Of a stretch of 64,000 nucleotides of DNA, positions 3,001 through 52,806 are shown one piece after another (positions within the stretch are counted from its first letter, which is position 1; each line of letters starts with the position of its first letter). A model generated the notes under the pieces. That model was not told where the DNA came from. It searched no databases and was given only the letters and a program-made list of their open reading frames with translations. The DNA lies in the sequence record MK250028.1, one strand, 5' to 3'. The position numbers and the translations under genes were made by a program.

Positions 3001-6000
3001 TCCAAAATAACGATGCATAGAATATTCTTCCATATCATTATCATCAAACATAAACTCAAGGTTTATAATATTGGAATATATAAGATTATGTCTTTCAAAA
3101 CCAGCAATAATATAATTATTAAACATTTCTTGTTTATTAGCTATATCTGAATTTAATATTTTAGATCCAAAATATGTTGTCTCTGACTAATTAACAAGAA
3201 TGCCTCTATCTACTGATATACCTTTCCATATATTATTGCCTTGTCTATAATAAGGAGAATTCTAATTATAATCCTGTTCAATAAATTGCAAATAACATTG
3301 TCCATAATTAGACAACATATTCTTATAATTATTAAGGTATTGTCCAATAGATGTTGTTGTTCTTAAATCAAATGTCTTTATAACCTTTGATTCTTTAATT
3401 AATTTCTTTAATTTTTCTGTATCATTAATTCCTTCACCTGAATATGTCTCTTCATTAAATATATCATCATATCTGAATATCGCGAAGAATTCTGGTACAT
3501 TATTTCCTATATGTAATGGCGCGAGAATCTTCATATTTTCAGAATAAAGACTATCTGTATTTGTTTCTGCACCATATTCATACATTGTTTCATATTGATC
3601 TTTATAATCAGTATAAACCTTATGTGCTTTCAGAGAATTTTCTGGTAATCCAAATAAATTTTTAATAGGAATTTTACTGAATACCTTTTTTATATCTCTT
3701 GGATAATTACCATCAGATGAAATAGGGTATTTACGAACATTCTTATTATTTAATACAGCATTAGCTTTAAATGTATCAAGATATAAGTTATAATCTTTAT
3801 CTACAACTAATTTAATATTTCCAGATAACTTTGGATTTGCTCTTAATAACATTGATGAATGATGTTGTGTATTAAGTTCATAACCTTTATTATCATAATT
3901 TGTTAGATGCTTTTCATTTTCATCATTAGTAACTATTAATCGTCCGTTTATTTTATTGCTAGATTTATCAGTAATAGTTAAAACAATATCTTCTGATGAG
4001 CTAATAGGATAATCATCATCTAAACTTATTGTAAATATACCAGGTTCTATCCTATTTTCAAATATAATATTATTATCTGTTTTATTTATGAAATCATTAA
4101 TATGAACACCATTAATTCTTAAATAATTTTTCAAAGCATTATTCTATAATGTTATAATATAATTTGAAGGAGTTTCTGCTTTTGCACGAATATTACTTCC
4201 ATATACAGATATTTTACTTATAACAGACTATGTATTAATATCAGATAGTTTTTTATCTTTTAAAACTATCATATCAGGTACTTGTTCTTTTAATTTATCC
4301 TAATCAATTATCAACTAATCTGTAATTTTGTCAACATATGAAATTTCTAAATTTGCTTCAATATCTGTTAAACTTTTATCGGATACTTCTTTTTCTGTAT
4401 TTGTATAATCATATACATCTGTTAAATAAATATAATTTCCAGATAAAATAGGATATACACCATATCTAGGAATTTGTTTTGTTAAAGGATTCGCACATTC
4501 TTTTGTTTCAATACTATGTCCGTCTTCATCTATGTCTATTTCATAATTATATAATTTTTCATTATTGTTTATATCGTCATTACCAGTTGCTATTTCATAC
4601 TTAGGTTTATCTTCATCCGTATTTATTAATACATAACGATGATATATAGCTCTATAAGAACTGTCTATACAACTTATACTCTTTTCACCTAATGTTATTA
4701 ATTTTGTGTTATCAACTATATCATCATTATTAGGATAATCGTTATTATCTTGGACAGGTACACTATAAATTATAGTATCTTTATTATTAATAGTAGTATC
4801 ATTATACTTATTACATATACGATTACTAAAATTATACATTTCTTTATAATCATTGAAGAATTCGGTTTCATCCTAATCAAAAAACACGCTTGAATCAAAT
4901 CGATTATATATTCTATATGAATTATTATGTGTACAAAAATTCTTGATTATAAAATCATTAATACTAAAGCTATAATTTTCAGCATTATTATGATATATTT
5001 TTATATTAGTTCTATATGTCTTAAAAGGCTCTTTATCATTATTAAACGTAAATGAGCCGTTAATATTAAAAGTATAAAAATCATTCTATGCATCCTTATC
5101 AACTTTAGTCGTAATATTTCTATCTTTAATATAAGTATTATATACAGTAGGAGACCAGATAAAAACAGGTTTATAATATATAAATTTTAATGGTACTGAT
5201 TTTTGTTTATATCCTAAATAAGCATTCTAAGAAACAACACATTCTGTATATGCACTAACAGACAATAATGATTTAGGATCTGTATATATTGCACTAATTT
5301 GAAACCTTAATACATTTCGGTCTTCCTATATAAAATTATCAGGTACATACAATAAATTGGTATGTGGTATTAATGTATTATTATCTGTATTATAATCAAA
5401 TGCTGGTAATAATAATGTATTGTTATTAAGTTTATCATCTTTCCATTTTGGTAAAGTTATATCCTTAATTGCCTCTTGTAATTTCTGCTCTTCTATATTA
5501 ATTTTATTATTATTATATAAAATTACGGGTTTAATAATTAATTTAAATGGAAAGTCACCTATATTTTTATCATATAAATTCCAATTAGTTAATGAATCAT
5601 TAATATGTGATTTATTATCGCTCCAATATATTTTAACATTAATCTTATAATTTGCAACATAATGATCATCAATATAACCTCCATTAAAATTTGAATTAAA
5701 TGCACTTGGTAAATCATTACCAATATTTACAAATGTACCTTCATCATATGTAGAATCGTCAGAATGAAATAATAAATCACTAAATATATTATTTGCTATA
5801 TTTTTATTAACATTAATATTATTTAATGGGAATATATTTCCATAAATTATTTTATTTGAATTTTTCTCTGAATTCTTTCCATAAAAAGGTAATTTATCAA
5901 ATTTTGCTGTTAATTCCATTTTAACAGGATATGGTAAATCACTATTTATATTTTCTTTATCTTTAAACTAAAACGAATCAGGGTCATATACATATCCTAA

Positions 6001-12006: not shown

Positions 12007-12150
12007 TGAAAAAAGTCTACATTATTTTAAATTATTTTTTAATTATTTTTAATGTAATTTTAACTAATAAAATAGACTTTTAATTAAGACTTTAATATAA
12101 TTATGCTATATAAATATAAGAAGAGAAAATTATACATATATAAAAGTAAA

Positions 12151-45967: not shown

Positions 45968-46837
45968 ATGAAGACTATAGATCTTATTAATGGTAATAAG
46001 TCAGAAGTAAAGTATGAACTTACTACATTCCCTGATGGTGAACCACATATTAAGTTCCTTGATGATATTAATCGTAAGGATTCTTATAATGTTAAGTGTC
46101 GTATTACAAATCCATCAGAGTTGTTCGTTGTAATGCAAGTTGGACATATTCTTAAGCGTCAGGGTGTAGAGTTTAATCTTCATATTCTGTATCTTATGAG
46201 TATGCGTATGGATCGTGTTATTAATTTCAATGAAGCTTTTACATTGGAGATTGTTGCTAACATGATTAATAGTTTTGAAGCTGAACATGTGTATATTTTT
46301 GAAGCACATTCTGAACGTACATTTAAGTTGATTAAGAATTCTGAACCATATTATGTATTGAGTATGTGTGAAGATTATAATAAGATGCGTAAAGATTGTT
46401 ATGAAGCAGAAAATGCAGTTATTTGTTTCCCTGATCATGGTGCATATGAGCGTTATTCAAAGGATTTCTATCCAACATCTGCATACATTTGTATGAATAA
46501 AGTTAGAGACCTTGATAATAAGGGCGTTATTAAGTCCATGGAGATTTCAAAGATGCAACTTCCATTTATGCATGAGGAAGATGTTGAACAGATTACTATT
46601 GTAGATGATTTGTGTGATGGTGGTGGAACATTCTGTTGGGCTGCTAGTATTCTTAAAGAAAGATTTCCTAAAGCAAAGTTGAATATTTTTGTTAAACATA
46701 TGGTAAATCCTATAGGATTAAAGAAACTTATAGGTTCATTTGATAATGTTTATATTACAGATTCATATAGAGATTGGACATCTGAAATTGAAGTAAATGT
46801 TAATTCAACAGATAAAGTTCATATTATCCATTTGTAA
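45968..46837 (+). CDS. Ribose-phosphate pyrophosphokinase-like protein (PRS/Adps-like)
   Basis: TFPDGEPHI, YLMSMRMDR, FEAHS, CFPDHGAYERY, KVRD and IVDDLCDGGGTF (PRPP-binding loop). Confidence 0.85.
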   Translation: MKTIDLINGNKSEVKYELTTFPDGEPHIKFLDDINRKDSYNVKCRITNPSELFVVMQVGHILKRQGVEFNLHILYLMSMRMDRVINFNEAFTLEIVANMINSFEAEHVYIFEAHSERTFKLIKNSEPYYVLSMCEDYNKMRKDCYEAENAVICFPDHGAYERYSKDFYPTSAYICMNKVRDLDNKGVIKSMEISKMQLPFMHEEDVEQITIVDDLCDGGGTFCWAASILKERFPKAKLNIFVKHMVNPIGLKKLIGSFDNVYITDSYRDWTSEIEVNVNSTDKVHIIHL

Positions 46838-46929
46838 AAAATATAAAGTCTAGATGATTTTCTTGATTATCTAGACTTTTTCTTTTTAACCTAATATATA
46901 ATATATAATTAATTTTTAATAATAAGAAT

Positions 46930-47532
46930 ATGAAAGAAAACGAATTTATTGATGAAGTCGACGAGACAGAAGTAAATCCAGATATTGAAAATAATAACAC
47001 AGAAGATACAAGTTCAGATATTAATGAAGATGATATTGTTACAGATGAAGATGATAATGAGTATGTAACAAAAGAATATGCTGATAATCTTATTAATGAA
47101 CTTAATAAAGCAAAGCAAGAAGCAAAATCATGGAAAGATCGTTATACATATCTTTATTCTGATTGGGATACATATAAGCGTAGAGTATTAAGAGAAAAAG
47201 ATAATATTTCTAAATATGGAAGTGAGAAAGTGATTAAGGATATTCTTCCTATTATTGATGATTTTGATAGAGCATTTATGCATATGTCTGATGAGCAGAA
47301 GGAAGGAATTTCTATTATTTACAAGAATTTTATTTCTGTATTGGAGAATCATGATGTTACTATCATTCCTGCAAATCATGGTGATGATTTTAATGATAAT
47401 CTTCATGAAGCTGTTTCAGTTGTACCTTCAATGGATGATAGTGAGAAAGGTAAGATTGCTGATTGTATCACAAAGGGATATATGTTGCATGATAAAGTTA
47501 TTAGATATGCAAAGGTAATTGTATTCAATTAA
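46930..47532 (+). CDS. grpE: GrpE nucleotide exchange factor
   Basis: Acidic N-terminus, YLYSDWDTYKRR, ILPIIDDFDRA, FNDNLHEAV and KGYMLHDKVIRYAKVIV. Confidence 0.92.
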   Translation: MKENEFIDEVDETEVNPDIENNNTEDTSSDINEDDIVTDEDDNEYVTKEYADNLINELNKAKQEAKSWKDRYTYLYSDWDTYKRRVLREKDNISKYGSEKVIKDILPIIDDFDRAFMHMSDEQKEGISIIYKNFISVLENHDVTIIPANHGDDFNDNLHEAVSVVPSMDDSEKGKIADCITKGYMLHDKVIRYAKVIVFN

Positions 47533-47776
47533 TATATCTAATATCATCGTCATCATATAATTGTTTAAGCATATCATCAATATTCAATTTTTGAAATTGT
47601 TTCTACTATATACTCATATCAAAATTAAATCTATTTTCTGATTTATTATATTTTGCAATAGTTTTATCAAAATCAAATTGATTATCAGTATCAAATATAG
47701 AACGGAGTGTATAGTTTTTACCATTATGACGTAATGTTTTTACAAATTCTCTATTAGTTGGATATTTTCTATTCAT
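47525..47776 (-). CDS. Small TAG-recoded hypothetical protein (83 aa)
   Basis: ATG 47776 to TGA 47525 with two tandem TAG. AATAAATA upstream on the minus strand. Confidence 0.5.
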
Positions 47777-47913
47777 CTTTAAATATATACATTAATTATA
47801 ATTTATTTATTCAGAATTGTTAATGAATATTAAATATAGAAAATAACTAAGTAAATATTTTTATATTTAGAAAATATGTTGTATCTTTGCAGGGTTAATA
47901 ATTATTAAAGAAT

Positions 47914-48444
47914 ATGAATACAAATGAAGCAAAAGTAATCAACTGGTTTGATATTAAGGATGATGTAAAAGTCATTAATGAGAATACTAAACATAAAAAT
48001 AATGTTGAGAATAAAGTAAAACATAATCATGCAAATAATATTAATATATTTGATGGGCCTATTCAAGTAAATCATGCTATTTGCAAAAAAACTACTGCAA
48101 AGATTATTGAGTCATTTGAAAGTGTACTTGTACATAATGTAGCTGATAAAGTAAAGTATCATTGTGATGGTGGCATCTTTAATGGTAAGACAGTTTGTAT
48201 TAAATGTCGTGCTAATGCATATAATACAGGTGGAAACTTTACATTTACAGAAGATGATTTAACAGCGGATATGATTGCTGTTTATTACTATGATGAGAAT
48301 AGTAATCTTGGACATTGGTTTATTTGTGATAGAAATCGTTTGAGCAAGAATAAGATAAAACAATCACAAAATATTTATATTGTTCATCAAGATTATATTA
48401 AGAAACATGCATGGTGTGAATATACGGTAACGTTTAATAAATAA
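47914..48444 (+). CDS. Hypothetical early protein
   Basis: 176-aa ORF behind the GTATCTTTG box at 47881. Confidence 0.7.
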   Translation: MNTNEAKVINWFDIKDDVKVINENTKHKNNVENKVKHNHANNINIFDGPIQVNHAICKKTTAKIIESFESVLVHNVADKVKYHCDGGIFNGKTVCIKCRANAYNTGGNFTFTEDDLTADMIAVYYYDENSNLGHWFICDRNRLSKNKIKQSQNIYIVHQDYIKKHAWCEYTVTFNK

Positions 48445-48545
48445 TTTTTAATTTTTTGAGAAAAAAGTTTGTAAAATTATAGACTTTTGAAAAAAATTTA
48501 GATATATATTATATAGAATAAATTAAAATAATAAATAAGATAATT

Positions 48546-48752
48546 ATGAAAACTTTAAATATGACATATTGTATGCATCCAGTTTGTGGTATGATTCACA
48601 TGTTCCCATGTGGAGGTGGACGACTTATGTCTTTACTTGAGGATTTAAAGTTTTTTTGTATGTTGCAATCATAACCGGTTAACTCAACATATATACAATT
48701 TTTAAACCTCAAGTAGAAAATATCAGAAAATCTACTTGAGGTTTTATTTTTT
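48546..48752 (+). promoter_or_regulatory. Putative leader-peptide attenuator (42-aa leader ORF 48546-48674, antiterminator and terminator) before the tRNA array
   Basis: CCTCAAGTAGA (48707-17) can pair with TACTTGAGG (48634-42, inside the leader ORF). It can instead pair with TCTACTTGAGG (48731-41), which is followed by a T tract. Confidence 0.6.
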
Positions 48753-48757
48753 AATAT

Positions 48758-48831
48758 GGTCCGTCTGGTGTAATTGGTAACATGACAGATTGTGGTTCTG
48801 TTGTTCAGGGTTCGAGCCCCTAACGTGACCC
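48758..48831 (+). tRNA. tRNA-His (GUG), imperfect acceptor and T stems
   Basis: Anticodon arm ACAGA-TTGTGGT-TCTGT and T loop TTCGAGC. Confidence 0.75.
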
Positions 48832-48849
48832 AAAATATTATTAATATTT

Positions 48850-48926
48850 AGCGTAGTGGCCCAGTTGGTCTAAGGCACCTGTTTTGGGAACAGGTTAGAT
48901 CGCACGTTCGAATCGTGTCTACGCTA
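48850..48926 (+). tRNA. tRNA-Pro (UGG)
   Basis: AGCGTAG/CTACGCT acceptor, CCTGT-TTTGGGA-ACAGG and GCACG-TTCGAAT-CGTGT. Confidence 0.9.
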
Positions 48927-49040
48927 CAGAATAGAGTTCTTATGTTATCCTTACATAACTAAAAGAACTAAAACTTAAGATGGTAAGGCATCTATATAAT
49001 GGAAGTTCACGCCCAAGGGAAGATTTATAAGTTATAATTT

Positions 49041-49115
49041 ACTCTGTTAACTCAATTGGATTAGAGTATTTCGCTACGAACGAAAAGGTTGTGAGTTCGA
49101 TTCTTACACAGAGTA
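49041..49115 (+). tRNA. tRNA-Arg (ACG)
   Basis: ACTCTGT/ACAGAGT acceptor, TTTCG-CTACGAA-CGAAA and GTGAG-TTCGATT-CTTAC. Confidence 0.9.
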
Positions 49116-49124
49116 CAAGTAAAT

Positions 49125-49198
49125 ATCTCTATAGCTCAAAAGAATAGAGCAGTTCTCTCCTAAAGAACAGATAACAGTTTGATTCTGTTTGGAGATAC
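49125..49198 (+). tRNA. tRNA-Arg (CCU), atypical T loop
   Basis: ATCTCTA/TGGAGAT acceptor and GTTCT-CTCCTAA-AGAAC. T loop reads TTTTGATT. Confidence 0.75.
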
Positions 49199-49269
49199 AA
49201 ACAAAATTAACATTATTAATATAGACTTTTATCTATTAATGGAATATATTATAATGTAATTTGAATTTT

Positions 49270-49705
49270 AAAATACTATTAAAATGTGGGGAGTAGAGTT
49301 CCCATCATTTAAAGAGTTTCGAGAAGAAGGTATTGTATGTAAAAGCATTAAGTTTCGTTTAGCTGACGAAATGTTACCAAGTGGTGATGGTATTCATGTA
49401 CATAGGTCCATCCGTATAACTTCAGGGAATCGTAAGCATTAATCTTGGAGAGTACAGTTTTTAGTCTGAAATGACGAATTTTCCTACTGGTTGCTCAATA
49501 TGATATTAAGAGTCGGAGATAATTATTTGTAAGTTCCACAATTACGAGAGGAAAATGGAATTAAGTTGAAGGAATAACGTGATTATTCTTGGTGTGATTA
49601 GGAGAACGAAAATAACCAGTATGTATGGTGTACGTGTGCATACAGAAACAAAGCAAATAATAGCCCTTAGAGAATTTGCCGAGTAAAGGACATTAATAGT
49701 ATTTT
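49270..49705 (+). ncRNA. Unidentified ~436-nt structured RNA inside the tRNA array
   Basis: Perfect 13-bp closing helix AAAATACTATTAA/TTAATAGTATTTT, internal long-range pair TACTGGTT/AACCAGTA, several hairpins and no credible sense ORF. Confidence 0.55.
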
Positions 49706-49714
49706 TATTTATTT

Positions 49715-49792
49715 GCAGTATTGGTGTAGCTGGAGGCGCATTCCTGACTTCCACTCAGGCGGCTTGCGCGAGTTCGATTCTCGCATACTGCT
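49715..49792 (+). tRNA. tRNA-Gly (UCC)
   Basis: GCAGTAT/ATACTGC acceptor with U73, and CCTGA-CTTCCAC-TCAGG. Confidence 0.85.
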
Positions 49793-50001
49793 CATAATAA
49801 GGTAGAGTATCAATGAATGATAGAGAATAAGTTCCTGTCTGAGATCAACCTATCTGTAGTATTTAGATAATTTTATGTATACATAAAATTATAACGAAGT
49901 TTATATTACCTGTAGTCGTAATATTCAAATCGTTCGTTGACATAGTTATTCCGTGATGTAGTAGAGAGTTATAATCAGCATATAACAAACGGAATATTTT
50001 T

Positions 50002-50074
50002 GCGGAAGTATATCAATGGCTAGATAGATACGTTGCCAACGTATAGGTTGTGAGTTCGAGTCTCATTTTCCGCT
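50002..50074 (+). tRNA. tRNA-Gly (GCC)
   Basis: GCGGAAG/TTTCCGC acceptor with U73, and ATACG-TTGCCAA-CGTAT. Confidence 0.9.
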
Positions 50075-50218
50075 CTATAAACGTTTCGAGGTTTTAAAGT
50101 TGAATGTACCACCTTGCGCTTGTGTTGCTATTCACCTTTGAGTAATAGTAAAAAACTTATGGTACCAAGGATGTTTTCTACGTTGTTACATCCATTTTTT
50201 TGAATATGATAGAATATG

Positions 50219-50364
50219 AGAGTCAATACAGCAAATTAAATTGATAGATAATGTTTGAAGATTATACACAAAAAGACTCTTGAATCAAATTATAATGGGA
50301 GGCAATACAGCAAATTTTGTATTAAGGATTATTTTGCTAAAATAATATTCTATACGCCTCCTGA
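50219..50364 (+). repeat. Two tandem small structured elements sharing AATACAGCAAATT
   Basis: AGAGTC...GACTCT-TGA (50219-50283) and GGAGGC...GCCTCC-TGA (50298-50364). Each has the same 13-mer after the 5' stem and an internal hairpin. Confidence 0.6.
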
Positions 50365-50369
50365 TACTT

Positions 50370-50452
50370 GACGAGTTGCTGAGAATTGGTTAATCGCACG
50401 GTCTGCAAAACCGTTGGTCTTTGACATGTCGGTTCGAGTCCGACACTCGTCT
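50370..50452 (+). tRNA. tRNA-Cys (GCA) with a long variable region
   Basis: GACGAGT/ACTCGTC acceptor with U73, ACGGT-CTGCAAA-ACCGT, and a 13-nt variable region TGGTCTTTGACAT. Confidence 0.85.
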
Positions 50453-50485
50453 CTTTAGATTAATATTTTAAAATACTATTATAAG

Positions 50486-50746
50486 ATGAAGAAATTATTT
50501 TCTTTTATATTTTATACAATAATGATTACATCATTATTTGGATGTGCAACAAAACAAGATACAATTAATTATCTTAATAATTATGTACATAAAAATATTT
50601 CTGAAAATTGTATAAACATTTTCAGTAATCAAAGATATAATGAATATATTGATACTGTTACTAATATTAAATATTATGTTTATATAGATTATAATAGTAA
50701 CATCAATATAACAGATAAAAGATTTCCGAGGTATACAGCTCGTTAA
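50486..50746 (+). CDS. Small lipoprotein-like protein
   Basis: MKK, a hydrophobic stretch and lipobox LFGC. Confidence 0.55.
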   Translation: MKKLFSFIFYTIMITSLFGCATKQDTINYLNNYVHKNISENCINIFSNQRYNEYIDTVTNIKYYVYIDYNSNINITDKRFPRYTAR

Positions 50747-51044
50747 AAGAGGTTGACTTGTATATTCTACATTACCTACTGTATAACAATATATGAGTGT
50801 ACATGTGAAAAGATACACCATGTTCTATTAATATAAAAATGTACATATATAGGGTAACAATTATATTAATATCAGATGCATGACATATATGAATATAATA
50901 ACGAATTCGTGAAATGACTATTGTTTTTAGTTGCTTGGAAACGGCGAACTTAGTTTTATCAATAGAGGAAGTATAATATTAAAACAGTTAAATGTAAATC
51001 TTTCTGAGACAATGGGGACAACTTGTAGTAAGAGAGTATTTTTA

Positions 51045-51159
51045 GCTAGTATAGTTTAGTGGCAAAACACCCAAATCCCAGGGATAAGAGATGGTTTGAG
51101 TTGTAGTGTACAATACAATATACAGAAGATTTTGGTGAGTTCGATTCTCACTGCTAGCT
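51045..51159 (+). ncRNA. tRNA-like RNA with a 65-nt insertion replacing the anticodon arm
   Basis: Acceptor GCTAGTA/TGCTAGC-U, D arm GTTT-AGTGGCA-AAAC and T arm GTGAG-TTCGATT-CTCAC. No canonical anticodon arm. Confidence 0.65.
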
Positions 51160-51165
51160 CAATAT

Positions 51166-51293
51166 GAAGTGCGTAGTTTAAATGGTAAAACATCCTTTGA
51201 GTAGGACTCTGACGAGAGATAGATAACAATGTTAGACTCTATTTAATTCCATTGTTTTATTAATGAGTATAGGTTCGAATCCTATGGTACTTC
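51166..51293 (+). ncRNA. tRNA-like RNA with a 76-nt multibranched insertion
   Basis: GAAGTGC/GTACTTC acceptor-like helix, D arm GTTT-AAATGGTA-AAAC and T arm ATAGG-TTCGAAT-CCTAT. Confidence 0.65.
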
Positions 51294-51583
51294 CAAATTT
51301 ATATAGATAAAAAGATTCTGGTGATTAGATAAAACATTATAAGAAAAGAGAAAAAACTTAGGTAACTGCAGATAACTAAGGGTCGTAAGAGTATATGAAG
51401 AAAGATGAACTATGGATACCTCCTTATAATGCGTTTTATCAATAATTAAAGTAGTCTATAATATAAGTTCATTAACGTTATAGAAAAAACGAATATTGAT
51501 AAGTCTACTATGCAGATGGGGCATTGAGAATGCCGTATAGTTCTAAAGCATCGTAAAACAGTTTATTTATATATTTTTAATAT

Positions 51584-51658
51584 GGCTAGATAGCTCAGTT
51601 CGGTTAGAGCGCGTGATTCATATCCACGAGGTCGTGTGTTCGATCCACACTCTTGCTA
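51584..51658 (+). tRNA. tRNA with CAU anticodon (elongator Met or Ile2)
   Basis: GGCTAGA/TCTTGCT acceptor, CGTGA-TTCATAT-CCACG and GTGTG-TTCGATC-CACAC. Lacks initiator hallmarks. Confidence 0.85.
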
Positions 51659-51771
51659 CAGTGTTTTTAGTTGTTTATTAATGATTTGAGATATATCAAT
51701 TTTTGGTATATCTCTTTTTTATTTAGAAAATAATTTGTATCTTTGTATTATTAATTTAAATTTAATAGATT

Positions 51772-52263
51772 ATGAAGAAATATAAAGTATATCAACTTCG
51801 TCGAGAAAATGAAGTTATTATCGATGATAATGAAATATATGATGCAAGAATGAAAGTTATTGCAGAGTATGAAATTAAATCAGATAGAATTGATTTTGAT
51901 ATTATTTCAGAAGATATATGGCATTTATGTAATGTTCATTGTTGGGATAGATCATGGCATGCAGGTGAAGGTGTTCAGAAAGATGATATTATATTAACTC
52001 CTACATCTGACTTTGATGGTTTCTGTAATAGTGATATTGTCGTAGAAACAGAAGATGGACTTTATCTTGCAGAATCATTTGGATTTATGAAAGTAAATTC
52101 GTTAGAAGATGCATCATATAGAATCATTGCGAGATTTCCGTTTATTTCGTGGGATAATATGAGAAATAAGAATGAATATGATAAAGATAAACTATCTGAA
52201 GTAAAACGTAAGATTGATTATGAGAATAAATTGATGTTAGAAGAATATAAAAATAAAAAATAA
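51772..52263 (+). CDS. Hypothetical early protein
   Basis: 163-aa ORF behind the GTATCTTTG box at 51737. Confidence 0.72.
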   Translation: MKKYKVYQLRRENEVIIDDNEIYDARMKVIAEYEIKSDRIDFDIISEDIWHLCNVHCWDRSWHAGEGVQKDDIILTPTSDFDGFCNSDIVVETEDGLYLAESFGFMKVNSLEDASYRIIARFPFISWDNMRNKNEYDKDKLSEVKRKIDYENKLMLEEYKNKK

Positions 52264-52368
52264 TTTTTTGGAATAATTTCTCCTAAATATTTTTTTATTT
52301 AAAAAAGAACATGTATCTTTGTATTGTAAATAATAAACATATAATAAACAATTAAAAATATAAAAATT

Positions 52369-52806
52369 ATGGCAACAGTTAAGATTTCTCCAGCACAGGT
52401 TTTTCCAGTAGCAAACAAGATTCGTGCAGCAAAGCACATCTCAATGAAGGAAGCATACGCAGAAGCAAAGGCACAGCTTATTGCTGAAGCAGAGAATGCA
52501 GTTAAGAATGCAAACACATCTGTAGAAACTCCTACTAATGTTGTAGAGATTCCTGTAAATATGGAGTTGCATGCACAGCTTGTAGAGAAGATGCAGAATG
52601 CAAATGTAAAGTTCGTATTCTTGAACAATAAGGGTAAGAAGATTATCACTACTGGTACTTTGAATATGTCAAAGGTTCCTACAAACCGTAAGGTACAGGG
52701 ACGTAAGGAAGCAAAAGATGAGAACACACAGGTATTCTATGATGTTCGTCATGGTGTATATCGTTCATACCAGAAGGATAAGTTGGTAGAGATTATCTCT
52801 AAGTAA
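52369..52806 (+). CDS. Protein with a C-terminal WYL_2/DUF2693-like SH3 barrel
   Basis: VKFVFLNNKGKKIITTGTL...VFYDVRHGVYRSY pattern. Early promoter box at 52313. Confidence 0.55.
   Translation: MATVKISPAQVFPVANKIRAAKHISMKEAYAEAKAQLIAEAENAVKNANTSVETPTNVVEIPVNMELHAQLVEKMQNANVKFVFLNNKGKKIITTGTLNMSKVPTNRKVQGRKEAKDENTQVFYDVRHGVYRSYQKDKLVEIISK

Follow-up and report, generated by a model that had tools for sequence, protein, structure and literature searches.

The 64,000-nucleotide window analysed here, taken from sequence record MK250028.1, carries an array of tRNA genes that begins with tRNA-His and, immediately upstream of it, a short leader in which a small open reading frame (ORF) is followed by an intrinsic terminator. 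This leader, together with a second one at another tRNA array of the same phage genome, probably acts as a ribosome-mediated, multivalent transcription attenuator of phage tRNA arrays, a reading that is held with moderate confidence on the basis of sequence and predicted folds. That the element is a functional cis-regulatory leader of tRNA arrays is very likely, given its conservation, duplication and position. As the effector, a ribosome with codon-specific sensing is best supported because the frames are open, their codon bias is specific to the frame and both leaders have the same functional boundary at codons 26/27 in the folding model described below. The initial annotation of the window, made from the letters alone, had proposed attenuator architecture ahead of the tRNA genes; this architecture is present, outperforms shuffled sequences, is kept in every Lak relative found and recurs in a second form at the other array.

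Positions 47900-49300 match Prevotella phage Lak-B1 (MK250020, 547,991 bp) at approximately 419.9-421.3 kb with 100% identity, and are 84-85% identical to the Lak A and C clades, where the similarity reaches only to the end of tRNA-His. Lak phages are megaphages with approximately 26% G+C, which read TAG as glutamine and carry 31-35 tRNAs (PMC6784885). The leader ORF is untouched by TAG recoding, as its stop codon is TAA. The leader in the window, before the tRNA-His array (array 2), is referred to as leader 2, and the leader before the other array (array 1, tRNA-Trp) as leader 1.

Leader 2 lies on the plus strand and starts with a promoter-like block (48450-48512), made up of an upstream TTTTTTGAGAAAAAAGTTT and a 29-nt core, AGACTTTTGAAAAAAATTTAGATATATAT, at 48481-48509, which putatively directs transcription of the leader. 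The block is followed by an A/U-rich 5' untranslated region for which no structure is predicted (48513-48545) and by the ORF (48546-48674), which consists of 42 codons and a TAA stop and encodes MKTLNMTYCMHPVCGMIHMFPCGGGRLMSLLEDLKFFCMLQS. The 42-residue ORF with seven Met, four Cys and two His that had been annotated initially is borne out exactly, and seven of its eight ATGs are in frame. The predicted terminator is a 13-bp hairpin of -17.0 kcal/mol when folded alone, formed by 48705-48717 (AACCUCAAGUAGA) and 48731-48743 around a 13-nt loop; UUUUAUUUUUU comes next and extends to 48752. The first base of tRNA-His is 48758, and the 5-nt gap between the U-run and this gene is too short for an intervening promoter; the intrinsic terminator that the initial annotation had placed just before tRNA-His corresponds to this hairpin (48705-48743) and its U-run.

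Alternative pairing is organised around the 5' arm of the terminator. Region 2 (48632-48650, codons 29-35) is the 5' strand of the predicted antiterminator and pairs with region 3 (48700-48717) through 11 bp (48632-48642 with 48707-48717) and a further 7 bp (48644-48650 with 48700-48706); the alternative partner first noted at 48632-48648 was therefore essentially right, the full pairing being 48632-48650 with 48700-48717. The antiterminator helix wraps an inner hairpin (48657-48693, -7.8 kcal/mol), which tops it and holds the TAA stop codon (48672-48674). Positions 48705-48717 of region 3 double as the 5' arm of the terminator, the 3' arm of which (48731-48743) forms, with the U-run to 48752, region 4 (48731-48752). 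Region 1 (48548-48558, codons 2-5) is a possible anti-antiterminator strand that pairs with 48645-48655, and in the minimum-energy fold of the full-length leader this pairing occurs together with the terminator. Region 1 pairing, antiterminator and terminator therefore amount to the classical 1:2 / 2:3 / 3:4 layout.

These pairings exceed what is found in randomised sequences. The predicted energy of the duplex that the ORF region forms with the 5' arm of the terminator is -17.4 kcal/mol, compared with -8.1 +/- 1.9 kcal/mol for shuffled sequences, and this value was reached by one of 2000 dinucleotide shuffles. The same duplex has -18.7 kcal/mol in Lak-B7 and -17.4 kcal/mol in the relative L008, with none of 500 shuffles reaching these values in each case. 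Positions 48520-48760 fold with a z-score of -3.9, and in all of the 13 homologues the antiterminator is part of the minimum-energy fold when the transcript ends before the terminator 3' arm.

The 29-mer AGACTTTTGAAAAAAATTTAGATATATAT is found at exactly two sites in the 547,991-bp Lak-B1 genome, one in each tRNA-array leader; the block at array 1 also has the same upstream TTTTTTGAAAAAAAGTTT, and the two arrays are 300 kb apart. Leader 1 contains a 37-codon ORF, MKQFNNIYKNNVDIYADSFNWYEQDCYADMLRDIVIS, at an equal distance from the promoter block (in both leaders the ATG is 61-65 nt past the AGAC of the block), and a terminator consisting of a -18.1 kcal/mol hairpin and a U-run approximately 15 nt before tRNA-Trp. 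Its fold z-score is -5.8. Past the promoter region and the opening eight or so codons, the two leaders have no sequence in common. The ORF of leader 1 also pairs with the 5' arm of its terminator: this pairing ends at codon 34 and has -19.3 kcal/mol (0/2000 shuffles), and in the A, C and G002 types of leader 1 it has -14.0 to -15.6 kcal/mol (p = 0.006-0.04). The Sup-TTA tRNA of Lak-B1, which served as a control, is preceded by a 59-aa protein gene and a weak hairpin without alternative pairing (p = 0.49). Among 24 Lak-type copies of the block in IMG/VR and metagenomes, 21 lead into one or the other ORF and on to tRNA-Trp or tRNA-His; the remaining three are incomplete or have an insertion of ~270 nt before the ORF.

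Copies of the leader were collected from Lak-B7, C1, A1 and A2, three IMG/VR contigs and several ENA/Logan and metagenome contigs, 13 of which were aligned. The initial annotation had made its proposal depend on conservation of the leader, and the leader is indeed kept in every Lak relative found, with a frame that is open throughout and a length that differs only by 9-nt in-frame units. In L009-L013 the 9-nt unit ATGGTTCAC (equivalent to 48591-48599) is repeated two or three times, which produces (MVH)2-3 and thus extra Met and His codons. From the promoter block through tRNA-His the B clade is ~92% identical to the A and C clades, and the adjoining 176-aa gene has merely 68-72% protein identity. 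Average nucleotide identity between B and A Lak genomes is ~61-65% (PMC6784885). The promoter block is nearly invariant across all relatives, and the terminator stem is invariant in all copies, its loop differing between clades. The inner hairpin at 48657-48693 is identical in 10 of the 13 copies, with changes in L008 and L013 and a single change in L037; in region 1 of L037, a C-to-U substitution retains the pair as G-U. As the homology of the B clade with the A and C clades ends exactly at the end of tRNA-His, leader and tRNA-His behave as one conserved module. In the A and C clades, approximately 1.1 kb is inserted between tRNA-His and tRNA-Pro (L001/L002, Lak-C1 and A1, positions 3886-4972; window 48832-48849).

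Synonymous divergence in the leader is 0.04-0.18 versus 0.33-0.57 in the adjoining gene, which is 3-6 times lower. Between B7 and L008 the leader has 7.5 non-synonymous and 1.5 synonymous changes, and between A1 and both L005 and L006 it has 2-3 synonymous changes and no non-synonymous ones. Since the substitutions over long range are not codon-like and synonymous sites are constrained, the constraint appears to act mostly on nucleotides, with some sign of constraint on codon identity among the close relatives (A1 versus L005 and L006).

The content of the ORF is best seen against the tRNA repertoire of the phage. The Lak-B1 genome has 33 tRNA hits, with about 20 at 123-138 kb, ten in the window and a few that are single. 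Array 1 consists of tRNAs for Trp, Asn (two), Val, Ala, Tyr, Asp, Gln (two), Ile (two), Lys (two), Arg(TCT), Glu, Leu and Thr and of two CAT tRNAs. Array 2, in the window, consists of His, Pro, Arg(ACG), Arg(CCT), Gly(TCC), Gly(GCC) and Cys tRNAs, two long tRNA-like genes and one CAT tRNA. Within the Lak-B1 genome, tRNAs for His, Pro, Gly, Cys and Arg(ACG, CCT) are found in array 2 only. The CAT tRNAs of array 1 resemble initiators in their 1:72 mismatch and GGG/CCC anticodon stem, whereas the CAT tRNA of array 2 has neither feature and is thus the sole elongator-type CAT tRNA. On the basis of tRNA distribution and CAT types, array 2 is thus the sole phage supplier of His, Pro, Gly, Cys, Arg-CGN/AGG and elongator Met tRNAs.

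Leader 2 is rich in precisely these residues. His, Pro, Arg, Gly, Cys and Met account for 20 of 42 residues in the leader frame versus 5-11 in the other five frames; this fraction ranks first among 208 small ORFs of the window, and the observed count was matched by 2 of 5000 dinucleotide shuffles of the ORF. The enrichment is strongest in residues 9-28 (consensus GMHPVCGMVHMFPCGGGRPM), where 16-17 of 20 residues belong to this set (binomial p 1e-9 to 6e-11 at a proteome background of 0.17). Codons served by array 2 only make up 13-17 of the 41-47 codons of leader 2 (background 0.131) and number 2-4 in leader 1; Met codons number 6-8 in leader 2 (background 0.018) and one in leader 1, and the codon class differs between the two leaders (Fisher p = 5e-4). 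Within leader 2, 16 array-cognate codons fall among codons 2-26 versus 4-5 among codons 27-42. The composition of leader 1 is consistent but uninformative, as 78% of its codons belong to array 1 versus 71% in the proteome. The match was spotted post hoc, but the residue set is dictated by the tRNA genes and was not fitted to the leader. The initial annotation had named Met, Cys and His codons as regulatory; these are enriched as it proposed, but the choice was too narrow, with Gly, Pro and Arg, the other identities of the array, enriched too.

The effect of a ribosome on the fold was modelled by cutting the transcript before the terminator 3' arm, keeping a 28-nt ribosome footprint unpaired and computing the partition function, with steric effects and kinetics outside the model. 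In both leaders, the predicted probability of the antiterminator is 0.7-1.0 for an A site anywhere in codons 1-26, and it is mostly 0-0.4 at codons 28-37, with 0.49 at one codon in B1; the changeover codons vary by type, with 0.13-0.66 at codon 27 and 0.42-0.88 at codon 38. Once the ribosome has arrived at the stop codon, the probability is 0.06-0.15 in leader 1 and 0.01 in A-type leader 2. In truncated transcripts without a ribosome, the antiterminator is absent in A/C-type leader 1 only and forms in leader 2.

In the mechanism proposed, transcription would start at the common promoter block, and a ribosome would load on the A/U-rich 5' end and translate the ORF behind the polymerase. A ribosome delayed in approximately codons 1-26 would leave region 2 (codons 29-35) free to pair with the newly made terminator 5' arm, no terminator would form and the polymerase would reach tRNA-His and the genes further on. 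With fast decoding, the ribosome would be on or just past region 2 as the terminator 3' arm emerges; the terminator would then form and the transcript would stop at approximately 48752. We infer three elements of this scheme, namely that the ORF is translated, that the hairpins compete kinetically and what triggers the switch physiologically.

As codons 1-26 are rich in Met, Gly, Cys, Pro, His and Arg, the device would sense a lack of the decoders that the array provides and reply with more of them. It is conceivable, and put forward tentatively, that Lak phages exert closed-loop control of their decoding capacity in this way, with two leaders under a common promoter type, each written in the codons of its own array, acting as multivalent 'hungry-codon' sensors. 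Decay of host tRNAs, a tRNA-targeting defence or late-gene demand would then open the terminator, and the tRNAs in short supply would be made. Phage tRNAs counter anticodon nucleases, retron effectors and PARIS (PMC10264068, PMC11555353, PMC11464382), and an anticodon nuclease as the trigger, which is speculation, would be compatible with such a role of phage tRNAs against tRNA-targeting defences. Host tRNAs that decay or become diluted over the long course of a megaphage infection would be just as good a trigger.

A number of observations weigh against a ribosome-mediated attenuator. The case is built on the sequence and on predicted folds, and it presupposes coupled transcription and translation in Prevotella and a terminator that acts on the polymerase reading the promoter. 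On the side of the attenuator, Bacteroides employs Rho-independent terminators, and small ORFs resembling leaders have been described there (PMC7366714). Against it, the codon match hangs on leader 2, since leader 1 is not distinct from the proteome; the regulatory codons are scattered with no tandem runs, and the divergent copies L008 and L037 have lost single Met or Cys codons. The antiterminator of A-clade leader 2 is weak (-11.9 kcal/mol, p = 0.06), and a G-to-U change in its region 2 has no compensating change. There is no true covariation, as the stems do not vary: with close relatives only and invariant stems, compensatory changes are not countable, and the comparison between the two paralogous leaders was used in their place. 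The gene-hairpin-tRNA layout is also found at the Sup-TTA tRNA, which implies that read-through of a hairpin may be a general route of tRNA expression in Lak-B1.

Two of these points concern the switch itself. In B-type leader 2, the type in the window, a ribosome at the stop codon leaves the antiterminator at 1.0 in the masking model. Moreover, once the full terminator is present, it wins at nearly all ribosome positions at equilibrium; any switch must therefore be kinetic, and this equilibrium model, set aside as a test of a kinetic mechanism, speaks against a thermodynamic switch. In the E. coli trp leader, 3:4 is likewise more stable than 2:3. A last point concerns the reach of the leader, which had been annotated as controlling the tRNA array. 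The array is not a straightforward operon: a second promoter-like motif, TAGACTTTT-N14-ATATATTATAAT, is located inside the array at 49222 (+), between tRNA-Arg(CCT) and tRNA-Gly(TCC), and may drive the Gly, Cys and Met tRNAs independently.

The terminator could instead be conditional on an effector of phage or host origin other than the ribosome, such as an antiterminator protein, a small RNA or an uncharged tRNA, which would stabilise the 2:3 helix or the inner hairpin and turn the arrays on at a set stage of infection, the ORFs being incidental. Such an effector would fit the conservation of nucleotides beyond the needs of the peptide, which includes synonymous sites and the hairpin at 48657-48693, as well as the two TTTTGAAAAAAA repeats that the promoter block holds and that are possible operator sites, and a stabiliser would be helpful in view of the equilibrium in favour of the terminator. 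This explanation is nonetheless unlikely, since it accounts neither for open frames of 37-48 codons at a fixed distance from the promoter in both leaders, nor for the frame-specific enrichment of array-cognate codons, nor for the boundary between allowed and blocked positions at codon 26/27 that the two leaders have in common. No candidate factor was identified, and an Rfam cmscan of 47500-52500 at E <= 1 returned tRNA matches only, with no leader, T-box or riboswitch or any other family; a scan of the other array at the gathering threshold also returned tRNAs only.

The leaders could also be two ordinary small genes with their own promoters and leaky terminators, behind which the tRNAs are made by constitutive read-through and the alternative pairings regulate nothing, and this is supported by several features: the peptide is called by gene callers in many assemblies, the few A-clade changes are all synonymous, its richness in Cys, His and Met resembles that of metal-binding peptides, and at the Sup-TTA tRNA the same gene-hairpin-tRNA layout has an upstream gene that is clearly protein-coding. 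It is nevertheless improbable. Non-synonymous changes dominate over long range, while constraint on synonymous sites is 3-6 times that of the neighbouring gene; the peptide has no Pfam match, and a profile search of 1.84 billion proteins found relatives only in Lak phages. A pN/pS of ~0.4-1.2 combined with strong synonymous constraint and with no relatives outside these phages does not fit a small functional protein, for example a metal-binding one. In addition, both leaders have alternative pairings beyond chance whereas the Sup-TTA control has none, and the codon set fits the array. Two other coding arrangements were considered and rejected, both on account of a 2-nt indel between the B and A clades at ~48701: a minus-strand ORF at 48596-48712 (38 aa, TTG start) is spurious as its frame is shifted, and Sup-TTA read-through of the leader TAA into the in-frame TAG of the terminator arm meets a broken frame in the A clade.

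The logic of the ribosome could also be reversed, such that any translation of the leader frees region 2 and tRNA output tracks the availability of ribosomes, with 1:2 and 3:4 forming and transcription ending when the leader is not translated. The B-type leader 2 is consistent with this, its antiterminator being predicted everywhere except at codons 27-38, the stop codon included, as are the minimum-energy fold of the full-length leader without a ribosome (1:2 plus terminator) and the failure of A/C-type leader 1 to form an antiterminator without a ribosome. However, the antiterminator of leader 1 and of A-type leader 2 is blocked in the model once the ribosome sits at the stop codon, and the enrichment in array-cognate codons is left without a reason, which makes this logic quite improbable. 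Least probable of all is that the ~240-nt transcript from promoter to terminator is a stable trans-acting small RNA with the ORF as a by-product, for although it has its own promoter and terminator, marked fold z-scores (-3.9, and -5.8 for leader 1), tRNA-like conservation and a possible counterpart in the highly expressed intergenic regions of Lak phages (Devoto et al.), two unrelated sequences that share just the promoter, the ORF layout and the position of the terminator before tRNA arrays point to control in cis, open frames with a frame-specific codon bias are not expected of it and there is no Rfam match.

At the level of sequence, the Lak element has the defining features of a leader-peptide attenuator. 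As in the trp, his, phe, leu, thr and ilvGMEDA leaders, a short leader ORF comes first and an intrinsic terminator directly precedes the genes under control; the antiterminator overlaps the 3' part of the ORF and shares a strand with the terminator, and in Lak the upstream pairing of region 1 is a possible anti-antiterminator. The codons match the regulated item, with multivalent sensing as in thr and ilvGMEDA of Enterobacteria, and the terminator is more stable than the antiterminator, as it is in trp. In contrast to these amino-acid operon leaders, the targets of the Lak leaders are tRNAs and not biosynthetic enzymes, and the setting is a phage of a Bacteroidota host. Leader 2 also differs in that six codon families are spread over approximately 20 codons without tandem runs, and the B type in that its stop codon lies within the antiterminator loop, downstream of region 2.

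Other systems have single aspects in common with the Lak leaders. The leaders of pheST and other aminoacyl-tRNA synthetase genes in E. coli and the T-boxes of Firmicutes also use attenuation to tune decoding to the charging or supply of tRNA, but they control synthetase genes, and T-boxes bind uncharged tRNA via a specifier loop and the T-box motif. In pyrBI and pyrE, a leader ORF is likewise combined with a terminator that depends on the distance between ribosome and polymerase; there the ORF traverses the terminator and tight coupling blocks termination, whereas in Lak the ORF ends 30-46 nt ahead of the terminator and a separate antiterminator is present. The tRNA clusters of T4 and T5 are similar as phage arrays that supplement or replace host tRNAs, but studies of such clusters concern the function of the tRNAs and not demand-sensing control of their transcription.

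To our knowledge, no case of tRNA genes behind a leader-peptide attenuator has been described. A full-text literature search returned nothing relevant on leader-peptide attenuation of tRNA genes or operons, and in the Lak papers, which describe tRNAs, introns and suppressors, the words leader, terminator and attenuator have zero occurrences. If the proposed attenuator is correct, no earlier example of tRNA genes under a leader-peptide attenuator would be known, nor of such an attenuator in a Bacteroidota phage, and this mode of regulation would be extended to tRNA genes, to Bacteroidota and to a virus. Phage tRNAs, which have been seen for fifty years as passive codon supplements and lately as decoys against tRNA-cleaving defences, would then belong to a system in which the phage gauges its decoding capacity codon by codon and adjusts it. 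Devoto et al. reported highly expressed intergenic regions in Lak phages, part of which the attenuator might explain; the published Lak transcript maps are from human samples. The element is compact (~300 nt), and its two natural versions with distinct codon sets provide a built-in control for specificity.

The promoter-like block belongs to a small set of related motifs in the window. An exact TAGACTTTT followed 12-14 nt further on by a TATATA-rich element is found at 46872, 48480, 49222 and 12073 on the plus strand and at 12011 on the minus strand, the last of which adjoins a run of N. These sites are located before grpE (46872), the leader (48480) and a 52-codon ORF (49222), and as a divergent pair near 12 kb; those at 46872 and 49222 have the form TAGACTTTT-N12-14-TATATAWTATA. 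The combination of TAGACTTTT and TATATA is a candidate Lak promoter type, and is unlike the TAnnTTTG consensus of Bacteroidota. The conserved 52-codon ORF (MWGVEF..., 49284-49442, plus strand) sits between the two tRNA blocks and ranks fourth of the 208 small ORFs in His/Pro/Arg/Gly/Cys/Met content. A third attenuator consisting of the 49222 motif and this ORF was considered and rejected, as no terminator follows it and the 447-nt region has a fold z-score of -0.9.

The ~270-nt insertion that interrupts some copies of the leader has inverted ends (GTGAAGTTAA ... TTAACTTCAC) and is present in L039 (leader 1) and L060 (leader 2). Its site is identical in both leader types, directly 3' of the promoter block and equivalent to ~48512. 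It looks like a small mobile element that targets the promoter block, and would part the promoter from the leader.

All genes of array 2 are on the plus strand. The first block, identified with ARAGORN and Rfam, contains tRNA-His(GTG) at 48758-48831, tRNA-Pro(TGG) at 48850-48927, tRNA-Arg(ACG) at 49041-49116 and tRNA-Arg(CCT) at 49125-49198. The rest of the array (49715-51659) contains tRNA-Gly(TCC) at 49715-49793, tRNA-Gly(GCC) at 50002-50075, tRNA-Cys(GCA) at 50370-50453, the two long tRNA-like genes at 51045-51159 and 51167-51293 and, as its last member, the elongator-type CAT tRNA at 51584-51659. The array is closed by a terminator-like hairpin (51688-51724) with a 12-bp stem followed by the T-run TTTTTTATTT. 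The long tRNA-like genes are 115 and 127 nt in length and have intact acceptor, D and T arms, with 40-55 extra nt in the anticodon/variable region and Rfam scores of 36 and 30 bits. They are missed by ARAGORN even in a run that permits introns, and their anticodons are ambiguous on manual reading; they may be among the 'Undet' or pseudo intron-bearing tRNAs of Devoto et al.

Upstream of the leader, at 45968-47532 on the plus strand, are a 289-aa ORF, a GrpE homologue (Pfam E = 5e-42) and the 176-aa protein, and this gene order is kept in all relatives. The 289-aa ORF has only weak, sub-threshold Pfam matches to phosphoribosyltransferase domains, and the 176-aa protein has no family match. Elsewhere in the Lak-B1 genome, including 121500-139500 of MK250020, unusual tRNAs are the two initiator-like CAT tRNAs, which are nearly identical, a tRNA-Asn whose anticodon is ATT, a call with a four-base 'tttt' anticodon and the Sup-TTA tRNA, which is located 8-10 nt past the hairpin of a G+C-rich 59-aa histone-like gene.

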